Shown piece by piece: positions 6,051 to 16,139 of a stretch of DNA of 64,000 bases. Each line of letters opens with the position of its first letter. Position 1 is the first letter of the stretch. The translations under genes were made by a program, and so were the position numbers. This stretch comes from Zygnema circumcarinatum SAG 698-1b (Eukaryota; Plantae; Zygnematophyceae): positions 1,054,001 to 1,118,000 of the forward strand of contig CM074811.1 of assembly GCA_037447605.1 (NCBI GenBank). Reading direction: 5' to 3'. Under the pieces are notes generated by a model. That model was given only the letters and a program-made list of their open reading frames with translations, had not been told where the DNA came from and did no database searches.

Positions 6051-9000
6051 TCAGTCGGTGGGTTTGGGATTGATGTCCTTTCGGTTCAGAGATTCGTTAG
6101 GTATTCGTTGAAGCCTGAGGAAAGGTAGGCAACTTAAAGAGGGGGGGAGCCGGAACCGGGAGAAAAGTTTTGAGGGGAGAGAGGGAGAGCGGGGGGGACA
6201 TTTCTGCAAAATCATTTCTTGTCGGATGAGGTGGGCAAGGGATAAGGATGGTGGGAATAGAGGAGGAAGGGAGGCATAGAAACACGCGAGGGAACTGATG
6301 ACAGATTGCAGGGGATCAGGGAAACATAGCAGAGACATTAAGAGGGAATGAAAGCAAACATCTAAAAGGACAAAGCGCAGGATAGAAAGGTTGACGATGA
6401 CGAACAGCGGGAGGTGTGATGGTTGGGGGGAAGGCAATGATGGCAAACTGCGAGAGGGACGGACATACTGTACTGCAGCATCATAAAAAACTGGATGTGT
6501 CCACTAGGTAAAAAAGAGTACGAGTGTCTTTATGTTGAATATTGAGAAAAAGTGATGGTATGTCTTCTATAGCTATTCTGTTTCAAATAATTTTAACGAA
6601 TCAATTGTGCACACAAATGGGACCAATTCAAATGAAAAATGGACTCCTAATGATGCTCTGATGAAAATAAATGTGGTTTACTAACTGAACTGATTTTCTG
6701 CCCTCCTTAAGCTTCTGCTCCTCGTTTGCCCTACCAAGCAGAACTTGCCTGCTCCTGTCTTCCTCTGTGAGCGGAGCTTATGATATGAGGCTTCTATGAA
6801 ACCTCTATGCTATGCTTGACTTAGGGCGCAATCCTTCCACGCATGTACCTCGAGGGCTAGAATCAGCACCCTTAGAATTAGATTTTTTAGCAGTTCTGCT
6901 ATTCCTTTTCACACTTTCATCAGCCTATCCCCATGGTATGTCGATGCTCTAAGTTACCTCAGTGGGTGGAAGGCTGTCTTGTAAAATGCCTTCCCAATGC
7001 TATTATTACCCTGCTTTCCTTCATTTTCCATGGCTCCGATATCCTTCGCAGTAGGCGGAGAGAGACCGAGAACCAAAGAACGGGTATCCGGACGCCATGG
7101 ACTTCTAGACCTGTCCTCCTCCTGCTCTTCATTAAACCCAGCATTGATCGTTTCCCAAAACGCTCGTCCTCCTTCAGCCTGACTCTCACCACGGCTGAAA
7201 ATCTTCTCATTGTTCAACAGTGATGGATCCACTTCTTTGCCCTTTGCTCCTGCTACTTTACCTTCTGCGTCAGCTCCTTCTTCCTGGGTTGTTTCGAGGT
7301 CCCGTTGATACCTCTCAGGCTTAGCCACAAGCAGCATTTCTTCCATTGGTTTATCCACTTCATCTCTACCAGAATTGAGTGTGCCGGCTCCTGCATCGAG
7401 CCCATGAAGAGTGTCCAAGGACATTCTCACCGTTTTCATCTTCCTCCTTGCGGGGGCGGTCTCCCCCACTCCCCTTGCCTGCATCTGCGAGCCATTGTAA
7501 GATCCCCACTTGCGATAATCCCTATCTGGTTCACCTTCCCGAAACCTTGCGGGCACTGTCTTGTTGTATTCTCTTCTCCAAGCCACTCCCCTGTTGTGAG
7601 CGTAACCTCCGGGTGGTGGAGGTAGTGGTTGCAGCTCATCCACAGGCAGTGGCCTACCTCTCGTGGAGTAGTCACGGTGAAGGTAAGGATCTCCACGACG
7701 ATAGGGCTCTCTATACATTCCACCTGCAGGGGCCAAGTCTCCTATGAATGCTCCGGTGGGCTCCCTAAAGTATGCAGGATGCTCATACCCATATCCATTT
7801 GCTGCCTGCTCAGTCAAACGATCATTTTCCCCACTGTATCCCCAGGGGTTGTTCCCTTCGTAAGGGACTCCGAGCTCCATTCCTGCGGGTGTGTGGGACT
7901 CCCCTCTGCTGTACAGCAATAGCAACGGGGAAGTATGCGTTATGGTCTGTGAGCATAGAAAGAGGGATTTCTGGAACATCCAAATTTGCCAGGCCTACAG
8001 GCGGAAAACTTAAAAAAAAAATGCGCCTTTTGCATGACGGGGATAGTCAAGTAACCAAAAAAATCTTGCAGATTAAACGGAACTGCTATGCAACCACACA
8101 AGCTAGCATTCATCATGCTGACGAGATGCTCCACAACAGAGGGGTGAATGCACTGGTAATGCTTACTTGGACATTTCAAAGTCGCGGCCACTGTAAGGAG
8201 TCATTCCCTGCGTTTCCTCTGTCCAGCCGTCTCCCTCTGTCATATATCGCCCTCCTGCCATCGGCCTTCCGCCGCTCCAAGCCCCTTCCCACCCCTTCGG
8301 GTAGCCATGGCTGCTAAGATTGGTATCTTGATACTCCTGCAGTTGTTGTGGGTAGGTAGAGTGAGTAGAAGGCCCCATTTGAGAGGCCCATGCCTGATGG
8401 TTTCTTCCGCTTCCAGAATAAGGCCCGGGGGACGTTTCATAAGGAGGGTTCAATGATGGCCTTTGCTTCGGCCCTACCCAACTGGAGTAATTGGCTTCGG
8501 TTTGCTCTTTTCGACCTCCTCCATAATGGCTTCCTCCTCGAGGAGGTGTCGAGGGCGTCATCTCCTCTGTGAAACCATCGTTCCTACCGCTCCTTCCCTT
8601 CGTTTCAGCATCCTTGCTCTCAACGACGGGATACAGCTGACTATTGGGATAACTGACTGCATCTTCATTGTTGAATCTGTTCATTGAGGAAGGACCTCCA
8701 TGTTGAACCTCTGGGCGCCTTCCCCTTGATGGTCCTCCCTGAGCTTCCACACTTGCTAAAAGACTCCTATCTTCAGGATGCCTATGTCGGATAGGAGAAA
8801 GGTTGTGTGCGTAAGTGCCTGCATGAGTTCTCAGCGACAAACTCTTCCGAAGTCGGTCCCGTTTCTCAACCTCTTCTTGAAGCTGCTGAGGCCCCGAACT
8901 GCTGAATGTATCGTCTGGAGGAAGAGACCTTAAAGATAAGCTCTTTTGCATTCGCTCCTGACGTTCGTGCTCTTCTCGAAAAGCCTGAACTAACCTCAGA

Positions 9001-12000
9001 TGGTTTGACATTCGAGGGGGTGTAACATTCCGAGGTTTGTTCCCACTTTCACCTTTTTCTAGTAGCCGAGTCGCAACAAGGTTCAGAAGGACGGAAGGAG
9101 ATGGCTTCGGTAAAGCGAAGGAAGTTGGGTCCTTTGCAGTTGCAGTGGGGCTTTTGAAGAGGGCTGGAGAGCTGCTGCTACGACTAGGGGCTGGGAGCAC
9201 TTCAGGAGTAGACTTAGGAGTGACATTTAAGTCTGGGAGTGAGAGGGATTGATAAGCTGATGGAGTTGGAGGAGGAGGGGGAGGAGGCAGAGGGGAGATG
9301 GGAGAAGTGGTAGAAGAACTTTGGCCTGGGCTTAACACCGGTGGAGGAGTCATAGGTGTATTCGGAATATCGGGATAATAGGCAGGGAGTGGTGATGCCG
9401 GTGGAGTGACTGTCGGCGATGCAGCTCCTCTTCCCATCTCGTACGGACTCTCTCCCAACATATCTCCTCCTTCTGCAGCTTCATCTGCAACAAGCTCCAA
9501 CTTGTGGGCTATACGGGCAGGTGTTGGACCGGAGGCCAAATAGTTGGTATCTAAGCCCAGAGAGGGAGTTGGAGGAGGACATAATGGAGTGGGAGGGAGA
9601 GCTGAAGGTAATATCCTTTGGAGAGCTCCTCCATTGTCAGCTATATTCTCCAGAATCGGAGCAACAAGGCTAGGAGAGAAAGGTTGGGAGAGGTCCATGG
9701 ATTGGCCTGCTGGGGTAGGTGGTGGGGCCCTAGGAGCCATAGGAGAGACGAACTGCTGAGAAGTTTGGCCTGTACTCACAATTCCCATAGGAGGGGTATA
9801 TGGGCCTGAACCTGCAAGCTGAGCTAATGCCTGAACGAGAGTGTTTCCGGGAGATAGCCTTTCATTAGTCGTTCTGTTGGCTGCAAATGCTTCTACCCAA
9901 GCCAATACTTCTATAGGAACTGCTGCTCGTCCCGGGGGAACATTTTCCGTCATTGAAGGATCGGAATAGCTACGTTTGGCAGCCACTCTTGGGGGAGTAA
10001 GAAAGGACGATTGGCTATTGACAGTGGCACTTGGTTCAAGGATGCCGACAGGGATTGATTTGTTTTGATGCATGCCTGATGTCCTCCGTTTAGGATCAAG
10101 TGAAACGCTAGGAGCACCTGTTTCTGAGGGTACTTCCATAGCTGTGTTTTCTGTGAGCTGGTCAGAGCCATTCCTTAAAGCAACAGCTTTCTTTGTTGCA
10201 TTGTCCGGCTCGTTCATTTCCCTCAAGCCAGACCTTGAACCCCCAAAACTTGCTACAGCTATTTTAAGGGAGTTAATGCCATCAATGACCTCAGTGAGAT
10301 TGCTAGAACTTTCTGGAGAGGTTTCCAATGGCTGAAAGTCTGTCCTGCTTGGTGACGGGTTCAATAACTCAGAGCATGAGGATGGGGCCTCTGCTGCTGA
10401 ATTCTCAGTCGCTGATCCATCATCGGTCTGCAAATCTATTATAATTCCTTCAGCGGAGGGTGCAATGTTCGGAAAAGTGTCGTCTTGCTCCTGGGGTTGA
10501 GCTGTTTGAAATGAAGCGAAGGATGGGGAAAGGCTCTGTCCATCACTTTCAGTCCCACTTAACTCAATTTCCTGTCCATTGCTCTTGCCATAAACTTCCC
10601 TTTCAGCCTGCTTGTCCTCCCCTTCGTCTCCTGACCTAGGCCTTGTGCTGATTTCCAGGTTAGCAGGAAATTTGACATCCTCTACTTGCCTTGCTTGATT
10701 GACTTCCAGGGGTTCATCGTCAACCTCCTCCTCCTCTTCGGACCCATTCTCTTCAGCTGAATCCTCGTCTAGCATGAGTTCAATTTCGTCTCGCTGAGGA
10801 ATTGTGAGAGGAGCAAGCCGAGGTGCCCTCGCTTTGTCGCTGAAACTGCTCTTCAATTTCCGCTCACTTTTGCCCTGCACAACCCTCTGGCTAAGGCCTT
10901 CTTTACCTCCGATTAGCCTTGTTTTGAAAGCTTCATCCTGCTCCTCCTTTCCTGCCTGCATAACTACACAATCACCGTCCTCCTCAGAATGAAACCCATG
11001 TGCCTCAATTCCTGCCTCGTCCAGGCCAGAAATCTTGAGAGACAAATCTACAGCCCGCAAATCTGCATGCGTTTCCTCTTCCCCTTCAACTACATTGCCT
11101 TTTTCAGACTTCTCCCTAGTATTTGATTCCGTGTCTCCTGCAACCTGCCACAAAGTAGGAGGTCCTCCTCCCCCATTACCAGAAGCTCGCAACATGGCGT
11201 CCAGGCTCGTCCTCCCCCAAGTGCAAACGTCCCAATCATCCTCCGTCGGCTCAAAGCTGTTCACATGGGCTACGGGTATAGGGCTACCAGGTGTCTGTAT
11301 AGGGAAGTAGGAGCGGCCTGCTGACAAATTGAAGCTGCTCTTGGCAGCTGCTGCGTTGCTTTGCTCCATTGCTAAGGCAACGGCAGCGTTTGAATGAGCG
11401 TTAGTATCAACAAATAACTGCTTCTTCGAAGTGGAGCGTTTACTGGCAATTGGGGGCTTGTGGGCCAAGCTACCCTGGAAGTGTTCTTTGGGATTGGCAA
11501 TGTTTCCCAACACCTCCAAATGGTTTGGATGGTTCTCTCCTTCTGCCTCGCACAGAGTCTGACTACCTGACCACTCTCTGCCGGTTGCATCTTCAGGCGC
11601 AGCAAATTCCATATTGCTTGAGGGGGGACCCATCGCATCACACTCAGCCACACCTACTATAAGCACTTCCTCAGTTGGGAACTCCTCGGTAGCTTTCAAG
11701 TCAACCTTCTCTCCCTTCAGATTCCAGCTCCATGCACCTATAACCTCCACATCTTCCTTGCTGGATGAGGCTCTTTCCAGTCTCTTTTCCGACTGTGCTG
11801 AACTCTCAGTATCCTTCAGTGTGCCTGCATCCTGATTGCCCTGCTTCCTTCTCTCTTCTGTTGTCGTGTCCTTCTCTCCACCTTCCCTCTTTCCATCAGC
11901 AAGCTCAAGGCTTGCCCTTACAATAGATGTCTTATCTACATCGATATCCACAGAGTTCATTTGTGCCACGAATCTATCCTGACTCTCCTCTCCTTTACTC

Positions 12001-15000
12001 ATTTTCCTCTCCCAATCTACAGTTCGAGAGTTCTGGGGCTTCATTGCTAACAGATAGCTTCTGTTGCTTCGGGCAGTCACAGCCTTACTTTGAGCATCAG
12101 TCAGAGCAGCTTCTGTAGTCTGCAGCTGTGCTTCTAAGTCCCAACAAGCCGCCTGGTCAAGATCAGCCACCTCTGTCAACTCTTGAGTCCTGTAAAACAG
12201 CAAATTCAGACCATACCAGTTCAGTTAAACACCACACAAAGTATCTAAGTCCTGGTGAATTGAATGTTTCCTCTCGATAAAAAAAATGTGCTCTGTCGTG
12301 TTTCAACAAGTTGATTGTCCATCTCCCGGTCTGTTCCTTAGACCCAAGAAGCTCAAAGTGATGCAAATTCCGTGTGGGGTGGCTTGGTGCTTACTGAAAT
12401 TGCATGTCTCGGACCCGTCGGCTAAGATTTTCCCGACGCTGCTCCTGCCGATCCCTCCTCTGCCGAGCTTCTACAAGCTCAAGCCTCAGCTGAGAAAGCT
12501 TTTCCTCCTCAGCCTGCATCCGCAACAAGAAGTCCCAAAACTGAGAAAAACATAAAAAATGAAGGTTTCCAAGCGATGACTGATTTGGACCACGGCATAA
12601 ACCTCCTTGTGAAAACGAATTTTCTAGATAGCCTAGACATGCAAAGGCTAGTTTCAGCTTAATGGAGAGGCTCAGCAGTGGACCATTGGTGTGAGCAGTG
12701 TACCATAAGCTGTTGGTCTCTGTCGGTGACTTCCTGCTGAAGTTGTCGAACTTCAGCTTCCAGACTCTCAGCTTCACTTGCTTTCAGCTGCTCGAGTTCT
12801 ATCTTTTTCCGCAGGTCTTCCTCAAGCTCGTCTATTGCTGCATAGCTATTTTCGAGTTGCCCGTCTTCACAGTCTCCAGAGTCTATAGATAGCTGACCTG
12901 TCTTCAGCAAGTTCACCCACTGCAAACAGGGAGAAACACAGGAACGGGATTGCCGAAGTCAGCACGAATTCGAGGACAACGATGTGATAAAGGCCTTTAT
13001 CACAAGGTGCGGATCGTGCAGCCTGAAAATAAAGCAACTCATCGCTCATCGCAGGTGCCCAAAGGCTCGGAGAGACGAATAAGGTGACTTTAAGCTCTTG
13101 CACACCTTATCCTTGCATTGCCCGGGATTTTTATTATGTAGAGCAGGGTCGCTCTCCTGAATCTTCTTCCATGAGCCTTTGCCATGCAAAGCGATTCCCC
13201 GGCGGAGTGCGTTCACCTCCTCTGCTGTCCACTTTTGGCGACAAGCACTCAATCGGGCTGCATCTGTCACGGATTCACAAAAAAGAAGGAAAAAACACCA
13301 ACGAGCTGGTAAGTACAATATGCCCTTCTCCCTCATGTCAATTGCCTGCTTTAGCTTGGGAAGCAGATACGACTTCTTCAATGAATGATTCTTTGTCATC
13401 GTCCAATGGCAGGTTCATACTTGGAGAAGGAGCTGGAGCAGCTACAATCAGCTGCATTGCAGCCGCTTTCACATTGCTGAGAGCGGCTGCAGATCGTCCC
13501 ACTTCTCGCTTCCGAATGCTGAACTGTGGAGGGAACTTGTGCATGAAGGAGGCACGGCCTGTGGCCCCATTCAACCGGAGTTCAAGTTCTCCCTTTTGGA
13601 AGAAAAAGCCCTGAGCTCGGCCTCTGCACAAGGACAAGGAACGGCGAGAGGGAATGTCTCAGCACAGCCCTCATAAGAGCGAGCAGGTCATGAGTCTGCA
13701 TGACATTGAAAGCTAACCATCATCTGTATCATGCTCGAGAGTTGTTTCACGAGCCACTATAGGATTTAGAAATATACATGTACAAGAATCATTCCATTAG
13801 AATATTCTGACAAGAGCTTGCCATTCATGTATTGAGTATACCTGAAGGCATGGTTGTCTGTGGAAAAAACCGTCAAAAAGAGCTCCACTGATACTCCCAC
13901 TGAAAGCTCCCAGTGGGGAATCAAGAATTCAAGGCGGCCGTGTTTCCTTGCGTTGGCCAATCGTTGAACGATTCGCAGATTATCGATCACTGTCAGGCCG
14001 CCACCTGTTCACAACCAGCACTGTTTCAGCACATGGCCTCACAAATCTAGCCATATTGAAACTCTTCTATGCATGAAGTTTCCAAATAATCTTTCAGCCC
14101 ATCGAATACAGCAAGCGACCAAGCTTTGACAAAGTAGGGAATGGCTGCTTACGGCATCGAGGGAACCAATGGTCGATGGCCCATGCCAGAGGCGAGCCAT
14201 CATCAGCATCTCGATCAAGCACGTTGCCGTAATGATCCACGCGGAACTTTTCCGGATCGAATCCTGCAGCTCTGCAAAAGGTGCAAAGGAAAATGTACCA
14301 ATGTCAATATGTTTAAACAATGAGTTCAGAGACTTGGAGGTGCACTGGGACATAGTCAAGGCTTTGCGCCAGGGTGTAATGAATGGCAAGTTAACTGTCA
14401 AGCTAAGCCTCAGGCTGCTATTTGTACATTTGTTGGAAGTTCATGTTTTTAGAAAGAATCTTGGCAGTCGACCAGGAGCACTGACAGAGTAGTCAACTTG
14501 CGAGAAACATAGCAAGACTAGATGAAGGAGAAGCCCTACTCCAAGTGTGGAAGCTGCTGCCAGAGTTGATCCTTGAAACAAGCAGTGTTGGGATCATCTC
14601 GTTCGCTCTCTTCCACTTTGCTGAAAACGGCATCAAGCTGCTGGGCTCGCTTTGCCTGCAAAATGAGCAAACAACAATGAAACACTGCTCTTAGTGACAA
14701 TATCAGCGCATCGCATTATGATCCAGATCCAATAAGTACGATGTTCCCATCTGCTTTGACTCTTCTGCAAAGAAGCCACAGCATGGCTCATTTTCTAGAG
14801 AAGAAAAAGGAAAGAAACCGCATCGTACACGATGTGAATGGATACAGAACAAATCCCTGACAACTCAGCAGCTACATGAGCTTCAATCAGCTTGCCCCTT
14901 TAAGCTTCTCAGGTTGCTCCTCTGTATGCCTCATTAGCTCTATGTCCCTTTACATACTCTGTAAATCAATACTTTCATATTTTTCTTTAAAATAATGCGA

Positions 15001-15520
15001 GAGCAGTAATGTGGACTCTATTTTTTATTCTTGAGCTGCCATCTAAAATCTTCTGGCTCTCTGCCTTCAGTCAATACGTAATAGTCCCAATCAGACGAAT
15101 TTTAACGCCCTTTCCTTGAGTCGAATCGAATCAGATAACTCTTACTGAACTTTTCCCTTTCCGGTGCCTTCTTGCAACACATTTCTACACGTCCCTCTTG
15201 AGGGCCTACACAGTTAACCATGTACGCAGAAACGCAAAAATGCATACAGCATTACAGATATGACCATGAAAGCTGCGTAAATCTCACATATCTTTTTCAC
15301 ACAATAACTTCTCCAGTCACTCCTAATGAATGAGTTTTGGACCTTGCTCACTCACCTCAGCTGCTGAAGGTTCATATGGCAGAAAGCAATGCGGCGGTCC
15401 TCTGCTGTAGGGCGTGATCTGCGCTCCTCTAAATGCGGCATGGCGGCAAAGTTTTGCATACCCTGCCGGGTATCCACGCTGAGGATCTACTTGCTTCTCC
15501 TCTTCTGTAAGGACGTCCAT
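6051..15520 (-). CDS. Large multi-exon protein (~2,000 aa): N-terminal HNH-like nuclease region, Myb/SANT domain, coiled coil and long disordered Pro/Ser-rich tail. The 3' end is uncertain.
   Basis: Phase-compatible exons: 15520-15356 (MDVLTEEE..GYPAGYAKLCR..GPPHCFLPY), 14655-14540, 14271-14153 (AGFDPEKFRVDHYGNVL..AWAIDHWFPRC), 14004-13842 (GGLTVIDNLRIVQRLANARK..), exon from ~13624, 13263-13106 (Myb), 12919-~12704 (WVNL + coiled coil), ~12522-12395, ~12190-8167 (4-kb exon) and ~7910 onward. Terminal exons around 6050-7200 are tentative. Confidence 0.8.
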
Positions 15521-15735
15521 ACTCTCCAGCACTTCTAACCCTCGTTTTTCACACTAAATTTACAGAAAATATGCTCTTGCAAGAAAGCCACAGGCGCCCT
15601 CGCTCTCATCCACTCTCACTTCTCTCCCACAAATACTGATGACGAAACACCACCTGCAATGTGATAACACTTGCAAGGACGGGATTTGGCTTCTCCCTTA
15701 GCGAGCAGGGAAAGGCGGGACAGGCGAGAGAGAAA

Positions 15736-15736
15736 G

Positions 15737-15783
<47 letters not shown>
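15736..15783. repeat. (GCAG)12 microsatellite upstream of the HNH-Myb start codon, probably 5' UTR
   Basis: Perfect tetranucleotide run read directly. Confidence 0.95.
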
Positions 15784-16139
15784 TCGCAGCAGCAGCAAGG
15801 GCGGTCTCCTGCTGGGAGGGAGGCGGAGGCGGCAGAAGATGAGGAGGGAGGGAGGGAGGGGGGGGGAGGAGCCGTTGGAGGAGCGCGGGATGCGGGGGGG
15901 GGGGAGGGAGGGAGTGCAGGGGGCCGTTTGAACCGAACGGGCGGGAAACTGGCGGGGGGCCGTTCGCACTGGCGGGAGCAGGCTGGGGTTCGTTGTTGTC
16001 TCTGGGAGGGAGGGGGGGCAAATGGGGTGTATGGACTTTCTGCCACTATTAGGACGGGTCAACTTTCACATTCCGCTTTTGAAGTAATTTCTAAATCAGT
16101 ACTTAACACCCAAGAAAAGGTGTTAGTTTATGGCACACT

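Follow-up and report, generated by a model that had tools for sequence, protein, structure and literature searches.

Gene structure at the locus

The region analysed here (the window) is a stretch of 64,000 nt from the streptophyte alga Zygnema circumcarinatum SAG 698-1b, and all coordinates given below are window positions. The host genome is intron-rich, with a G+C content of 47.7%. With high confidence, the minus strand of the window carries a single gene of nine exons (15520-8163) that encodes a protein of approximately 1761 amino acids (aa) and is, in identity and architecture, the algal orthologue of the streptophyte AT3G15550-like family. The parts of the protein are, in order, an N-terminal module, an intact HNH-type motif, a linker, a TRF-type Myb repeat, a coiled coil of approximately 150 residues, and a long tail of low complexity. 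Mosses, lycophytes, ferns, and gymnosperms have these parts in the same order.

The gene model was built from the minus-strand sequence with canonical GT..AG introns. Every intron of the model is GT..AG, and the reading frame stays open throughout. RNA evidence was taken from contigs of four public runs of the same organism, compared over 11700-16100. The nine exons are as follows.

Exon 1, 15356..15520, minus strand: residues 1-55; start ATG at 15520; N-terminal GYPxGYAKLC...GPPxxFxPY module; 52% identity to a Taxus protein (P0019, alignment A1).
Exon 2, 14540..14655, minus strand: residues 56-93; 37% identity to the family; RNA cover by one unspliced short contig only.
Exon 3, 14153..14271, minus strand: residues 94-133; FRVDxYGNV hairpin and first HNH half; D127 at 14174-14172, H128 at 14171-14169; 64% identity to the family.
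Exon 4, 13842..14004, minus strand: residues 134-187; second HNH half (RGG, N142 at 13981-13979, N151 at 13954-13952, K154 at 13945-13943) and FLxPxW..G block; 51% identity to the family.
Exon 5, 13421..13623, minus strand: residues 188-255; linker with the family block FPxxF..K...G...AA; among several in-frame donors, the one at 13421 looks best.
Exon 6, 13106..13263, minus strand: residues 256-308; single Myb repeat, helices 1-3 to KDK; W267 at 13231-13229.
Exon 7, 12704..12919, minus strand: residues 309-380; starts with WVNL, the end of Myb helix 3, followed by the start of the coiled coil.
Exon 8, 12395..12513, minus strand: residues 381-419; coiled coil; ends at a CA/GTAAGC donor.
Exon 9, 8163..12189, minus strand: residues 420-1761; LDQAAC and continuation of the coiled coil, then a Ser/Pro/Glu-rich tail of approximately 1280 residues; stop at 8165-8163.

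The main evidence that these exons form one gene is their co-linearity with land-plant proteins. In BLASTP, residues 2-469 of the algal protein align in one segment with residues 5-473 of an Adiantum nelumboides protein (P0007), with 40% amino acid identity (E 3.6e-87). The model aligns nearly as well to proteins of Diphasiastrum, Ginkgo, Taxus, Physcomitrium, Sphagnum, and Selaginella. Because this single alignment spans the HNH motif, the Myb repeat, and the coiled coil, it places the HNH and Myb exons in one gene, and it also supports the linker/Myb joint and the exon 8/9 joint, both of which it crosses and neither of which was seen in RNA.

A preliminary description of this locus, made from the DNA letters alone, had let the gene end at the TAA at 12391. 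This end was not upheld. The TAA, at 12393-12391, falls inside the GTAAGC donor of exon 8, and the gene continues into exon 9. Intron 8 is 205 bases long, and its acceptor (ttttacag/G at 12190) opens into a frame of 1341 codons (12189-8163), approximately 4 kb in one open frame. The joined text of exons 8 and 9 reads RVRDMQFQ/TQELTEVADLDQAAC, and the RD-x15-QAAC spacing across this joint is identical to that of the fern protein P0007 (MIRDTMHQ...LNQAAC). The co-linear coiled coil of the family (MIRDxMHQ...LNQAA) is thus present in the alga as RVRDMQFQ...LDQAAC. Searches with the 1341-codon exon and with the open reading frame of the Myb exon found no annotated protein from this genome and no transcript-derived fragments of it. 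In intron 8, one base of a T run (12279) is missing in a contig of run X4, which represents a length polymorphism or a homopolymer error.

HNH-type motif, Myb repeat, and their distribution in plants

The family to which the new algal gene belongs is the streptophyte AT3G15550-like group. Its members appear in databases under the names "HNH nuclease domain-containing protein", "Myb-like domain-containing protein", "trichohyalin", "titin homolog", and "like AT3G15550". Examples are Adiantum nelumboides MCO5604480.1, Diphasiastrum complanatum KAJ7517096.1, Ginkgo Gb_23424, Taxus chinensis KI387_019000, and Physcomitrium A0A7I4FD07. Exon 4, searched against 1.84 billion representative proteins, gave 57 matches, mostly at residues ~130-190 as in the algal model. 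The top match of this representative search (P0001, 25 stretches) was rejected as a repetitive low-complexity artefact. Using the Taxus protein P0019 as the query, 251 proteins were retrieved, and all named ones are from land plants. The family blocks are all present in the alga, including the N-terminal module (GYPAGYAKLC...GPPHCFLPY), FRVDxYGNV, DHWFPxxRGGxTxxxNL, and KLEFLxPWW, the last with PHWE where the family has PWWD. Exon by exon, the identity to this large plant family ranges from 27 to 64%. The preliminary description had likened the N-terminus to that of a land-plant family, and the exon alignments and both searches bear this out. No relative of the family-specific blocks was found in the 185,579 bacterial and archaeal genomes scanned.

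Exon 3 ends with AIDHWFPRC and exon 4 continues with RGGLTVIDNLRIVQRLANARK, giving the motif D127-H128-x13-N142-x8-N151-x2-K154. All five HNH positions are intact in the alga, and the Asp-His pair, the bracing Asn, and the final metal-ligand Asn stand at canonical spacing. The spliced motif and both peptides of the preliminary description were reproduced exactly, and both joints that it had written out occur in RNA contigs. It had read the spacing as Cas9-type, which does not hold as a distinction: this is the ordinary HNH spacing, and phage HNH endonucleases that were fetched have an identical H-x13-N-x8-N-x2-K. The motif aligns without gaps between a phage contig (LLLEVDHIIPISKGGKTEASNLQTLCWRCNRAKSNK), Taxus (LAWEVDHWFPHSRGGKTVSSNLRLVQWQVNQRKQNK), and the alga (IDHWFPRCRGGLTVIDNLRIVQRLANARKHGR). 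The gapless match to the inspected phage HNH endonucleases covers D-H, P, GG, N-L, and N..K. When the Taxus core was compared with 50,697 phage records by tblastn, 73 records were matched (best E 5e-4), and all annotated matches are HNH endonucleases. Both CxxC zinc-knuckle pairs are lost in the plant family, with FRVDxYGNV in place of the first and Q..A/V in place of the second.

Three Pfam models match one and the same segment of ~35 residues, HNH_4 in 11 of 48 family members, HNH in 16, and HNH_5 in 8 (E<0.1), always just below the curated cut-offs. In ESM Atlas, the neighbours of Taxus P0019 belong to HNH families, whether compared by sequence features or by predicted structure. The low-confidence ESM Atlas model of this protein superimposes on a 105-aa bacterial HNH protein with a TM score of 0.75 (by target, 94 residues). 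Judged from these sequence and profile matches, the family domain very likely adopts an HNH fold.

The motif might instead be a chance resemblance within a plant-specific domain unrelated to HNH nucleases, a reading that we regard as very improbable. Such a domain would fit the sub-threshold scores of all Pfam HNH models, the empty result of a profile search against PDB sequences, and the low confidence of the structural models. Three independent HNH models nevertheless fall on the same 35 residues in many members, and the phage matches and ESM Atlas neighbours described above point to HNH families. The spliced motif itself is no product of chance: the domain around it shares 27-64% identity per exon with a large plant family.

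The Myb repeat is split between exon 6, which encodes RQKWTAEEV...GQCKDK, and exon 7, which opens with WVNL. Pfam Myb_DNA-binding (PF00249) matches exon 6 alone with 37.7 bits, above the cut-off of 24.4 (E 2.3e-9). H128 and the Myb W267 are 139 residues apart, within the 120-145 aa that had been predicted for this distance. Among solved structures, the best single-domain match of the family Myb profile is the human TRF2 Myb, over all three helices (E 3e-12), followed by zebrafish Terfa, TRF1, yeast Tbf1, and plant TBP1. This result of the family profile supports the proposed assignment to the TRF type. The Myb exon of the alga itself matches TRF2 weakly (E 2.8e-4, helices 1-2 only). Its helix 3 reads GQCKDKWVN, compared to VQIKDKYRL in the family and VMIKDRWRT in TRF2, in agreement with the deviating recognition helix noted earlier. 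It retains K-D-K-W, but the Arg that follows the aromatic residue in the family and in TRF proteins is missing. Given this helix and the weak TRF2 match, telomere binding should not be assumed. Downstream of the Myb repeat, residues 325-476 include a single Pro and a single Gly, and 74% of them are E/L/Q/R/K/A/D, a composition that fits a long coiled coil (~150 residues). No homologue of the Ser/Pro/Glu-rich tail (~1280 residues) was detected.

A Pfam Myb domain at residues ~270-320 was identified in Adiantum P0007, Taxus P0019, Ginkgo P0026, Diphasiastrum P0041 and P0022, Selaginella P0038, Physcomitrium P0050, and Sphagnum P0186. With a hidden Markov model made from these segments, Myb copies that are weaker or decayed were also detected in additional sequences from mosses, ferns, and other sources. 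The complete D-H-N-N-K set occurs together with Myb in Adiantum, Taxus, Ginkgo, and Diphasiastrum, and in Sphagnum troendelagicum with a partial Myb. Angiosperm members have no Myb, and Cys stands at the last Asn in 110 of approximately 150 sequences. Elsewhere, in many moss, fern, and lycophyte copies, this place is taken by Arg, Ser, Tyr, or Lys, and in Selaginella and one Diphasiastrum copy the Asp is lost as well. D-H, the bracing Asn, and the Lys are retained in nearly all members, and in most of the old lineages sampled one copy or more has the complete set of five. In the N-terminal domain tree, rooted on the alga branch, copies with D-H-N-N-K and Myb have the shortest branches, and the alga itself forms a long branch.

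The preliminary description had characterised the land-plant family as one that lacks the Myb domain and the final Asn. This is correct for angiosperms and fails for mosses, lycophytes, ferns, and gymnosperms, which have Myb and in several cases D-H-N-N-K. Its suggestion that the alga keeps a special, intact ancestral form must be withdrawn. Myb-bearing members are already public for mosses, lycophytes, ferns, Ginkgo, and Taxus, and the residues and the fusion occur together in Adiantum, Taxus, Ginkgo, and Diphasiastrum. Uniqueness fails because other plants already carry both, which is the outcome that the preliminary description had itself named as a refutation.

Two further patterns were observed in the family. 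In a direct comparison of members across the family (P0007, P0019, P0026, and P0041 versus angiosperm members), loss of Myb appears to go together with replacement of the last HNH Asn. In lineages with two copies, usually one copy keeps Myb and the Asn and the other lacks the Asn. A divergent family member was also found at positions 2921-3996 of L001, a 6-kb contig of 63% G+C (Logan SRR14092360) that is possibly of algal origin. Its HNH-like domain has the final Asn (QWQANSNK) and one intron at the same place inside the HNH motif, and a Myb-like exon lies approximately 250 bases downstream on the same strand. Literature searches found no functional study of the family; AT3G15550 appears in two gene lists only, one of which remarks on its similarity to chromatin remodelling proteins.

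RNA contigs and a spliced antisense transcript

Three joints of the model were seen in RNA contigs. The joint 14004/14153, which removes the intron splitting the HNH motif, occurs in a contig of run X4, the joint 13623/13842 in a contig of run X3, and the joint 12919/13106 (KDK/WVNL) in a contig of run X4. All three match the model exon borders exactly and read CT..AC on the plus strand, as minus-strand introns do. The remaining joints, namely 15356/14655 (the exon 1 donor), 14540/14271, 13421/13263, and 12395/12189, were seen in no RNA contig of the four runs. The joint 13421/13263 is the decisive one, as it connects the HNH half of the gene to the Myb repeat; it is supported by co-linear homology and absent from the RNA contigs. 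The earlier claim that HNH and Myb belong to one gene thus stands on the alignment of residues 2-469 to Adiantum P0007, and the transcript evidence that had been proposed for it was not obtained at this joint.

On the opposite strand, one further feature was identified.

Spliced antisense RNA, 11659-14372, plus strand: overlaps exons 4-9; plus-strand GT..AG introns 11689-12426 and 13309-13412; antisense exons cover sense introns.

A skip of 104 bases at 13309-13412, with its contig joint at 13307/13412, is present in all four runs. It reads GTAAGT...CAG on the plus strand, the depth inside it is exactly zero, and the bin depths equal the flanking depth multiplied by 52/147. In runs X3 and X4, contigs ending at 12426 continue with 29 letters that map to 11659-11687, revealing a second plus-strand intron at 11689-12426. 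As both introns are plus-strand GT..AG introns, they indicate a spliced antisense RNA. A sense-strand intron or a strain deletion was rejected as the source of the 104-base skip, and no minus-strand offset yields GT..AG, GC..AG, or AT..AC. The same antisense contigs pass unspliced through sense introns, and the antisense RNA is the main source of the apparent retention of these introns. It is seemingly more abundant than the sense mRNA in these four runs and contains no open reading frame longer than 134 aa.

With the decisive joint unseen, the locus could be divided into two genes, of which the first would be HNH-like and stop within exon 5 by read-through (13340-13338), and the second would encode Myb, coiled coil, and tail from an ATG at 13399 or 13336. 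The Myb exon frame is indeed open upstream to the ATG at 13399, and the joint 13421/13263 is absent from the contigs of all four runs. We nevertheless consider this division improbable. Single proteins with this order and spacing of parts exist in at least eight land-plant lineages, and in L001, too, the HNH domain is followed on the same strand, at a distance of approximately 250 bases, by a Myb-like exon. The splice signals of intron 5 argue in the same direction, with GTATGA (13420) as the best donor and a long pyrimidine tract before a strong acceptor at 13264. Coverage over the sense introns, which might suggest unspliced sense RNA, is accounted for by the antisense RNA.

Other observations concern the upstream end of the gene. 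At 14932, in intron 1, contigs of runs X3 and X4 diverge into 200-255 letters that occur nowhere in the window, with no splice signal on either strand; this break could be a structural strain difference or a distant joint. Just upstream of the gene there is a microsatellite of the (CTGC)n type (15721-15790). Over a G/A-rich stretch at 15816-15962, the contig depth reaches 84 and back-joints appear, which is probably low-complexity cross-mapping.

Proposed function and comparison with known systems

The best explanation overall combines the nine-exon gene with a Myb-tethered dimeric nuclease, and we consider it evenly balanced between right and wrong. That the protein is an active Myb-directed nuclease is a possibility that falls a little short of even. 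Single-Myb TRF-type proteins need two repeats for stable binding to duplex DNA. In the proposed mechanism, the coiled coil would form a dimer and thereby bring together two Myb repeats and two HNH sites. The Myb repeats would hold the protein at a short motif in duplex DNA that is possibly telomere- or telobox-like, and each HNH site would cut one strand by the usual one-metal mechanism. His128 would act as the general base, Asp127 and Asn151 would hold Mg/Mn, and Asn142 would brace the hairpin. In a wider and rather unlikely version, plants from streptophyte algae to gymnosperms would keep a dimeric chromosomal HNH nuclease aimed by a TRF-type Myb, angiosperms would have disarmed it by loss of Myb and replacement of Asn by Cys, and the antisense RNA might regulate the algal gene.

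Several results weigh against the nuclease explanation. The Pfam HNH scores stay under the curated cut-offs, the best being that of Taxus P0019 (HNH_4, 21.4 bits versus 22; HNH, 17.2 versus 21.4), and the exon pieces of the alga itself have no Pfam HNH match, because an intron splits the motif. AlphaFold2 gave a predicted local distance difference test score (pLDDT) of 53 for the N-terminal domain (262 aa, 48 rows) and of 50 for the HNH core (133 aa, 53 rows). A Foldseek search of PDB with both of these low-confidence models returned noise only, and the N-terminal alignment, used as a profile against PDB sequences, gave no match at E up to 10. In many orthologues the last metal ligand is replaced, two lycophyte copies are also without the Asp, and the algal helix 3 is without the Arg of the family. 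The four unseen joints, and the many other in-frame donor/acceptor pairs of intron 5, count on the same side.

The wide replacement of the last metal ligand implies that the conserved role of the domain may be other than catalysis. The gene and its architecture would then be the same, the HNH-like domain would be a non-catalytic DNA- or protein-binding scaffold, the protein would be a Myb-tethered coiled-coil protein of chromatin or nuclear structure, and the algal motif would be an ancestral leftover. This reading, the main rival of the nuclease explanation, is possible, though on the doubtful side. It would account for the Cys in 110 angiosperm sequences, for the Arg, Ser, Tyr, or Lys at this place in many copies from mosses, ferns, and lycophytes, and for a domain that is very conserved as a whole even though Selaginella and one Diphasiastrum copy lack the Asp; it also agrees with the lack of a confidently modelled nuclease fold. 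It explains less well why nearly every member has preserved D-H, the bracing Asn, and the Lys, why the alga keeps all five residues, and why most old lineages sampled have a five-residue copy, on the shortest branches.

Whether catalytic or not, the combination of HNH, Myb, and coiled coil, complete in its catalytic-type residues, predates land plants, as the host is a streptophyte alga. This is a widespread plant family for which no functional study was found; its slowly evolving copies keep the nuclease residues and the DNA-binding domain, and flowering plants lost both. Non-flowering or algal proteins are therefore the right candidates for activity tests. Since databases already contain the fusion and the residues for many plants, the discovery is a modest one; the algal member, the corrected gene model, and the antisense RNA are new here. 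If the nuclease explanation is true, a dimeric Myb-guided HNH nuclease would constitute an unstudied protein-guided DNA-cutting system of the plant nucleus.

Among known systems, the AT3G15550-like family is the closest. It is co-linear with the algal protein over approximately 470 residues and shares GYP..YAKLC, DHWFP..RGG.T...NL......N..K, FLxPxW, the linker, Myb, and the coiled coil with RD-x15-QAAC. The alga differs in being only ~40% identical on a long branch, in reading Q-R-L-A where the family has Q-W-Q-V before the last Asn, in its altered Myb helix 3, and in its 1280-residue tail without a homologue. Phage and bacterial HNH endonucleases (PF01844, PF13395, PF14279; e.g., Lactococcus phage 50101 ANS02419.1) share D-H-x2-P-x3-G-G-x5-N-L-x7-N-x2-K. 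In contrast to them, the plant family has no CxxC pairs, and its motif lies inside a conserved domain of ~240 residues that is fused to Myb and a coiled coil.

The HNH domain of SpCas9, with the active-site residues D839, H840, N854, N863, and K866, has identical spacing and likewise lacks cysteines that bind zinc. Of the Pfam HNH models, the one that scores highest for the family is HNH_4, whose range includes Cas9-type HNH domains. The family differs from SpCas9 in having no RuvC, no guide-RNA apparatus, and no significant sequence match; its HNH_4 score remains below the cut-off, and no other Cas9 part was found in the 1761-aa protein. The gene product is no Cas9 relative in any useful sense.

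TRF1/TRF2 and the plant TRB/SMH and TRP/TBP1 proteins resemble the family in their single Myb repeat and in having a dimerising region beside it, which in the family is the predicted coiled coil. Unlike in TRF1/TRF2 and TRB/SMH, dimerisation in the family would use this coiled coil and not a TRFH or H1/H5 domain. ZRANB3 is a human SNF2 translocase with a C-terminal HNH nuclease. Its architecture is unrelated to that of the algal protein, and no sequence relation was found, though no search aimed at one was made; it is likewise a nuclear eukaryotic protein that pairs an HNH nuclease with a DNA-targeting module.

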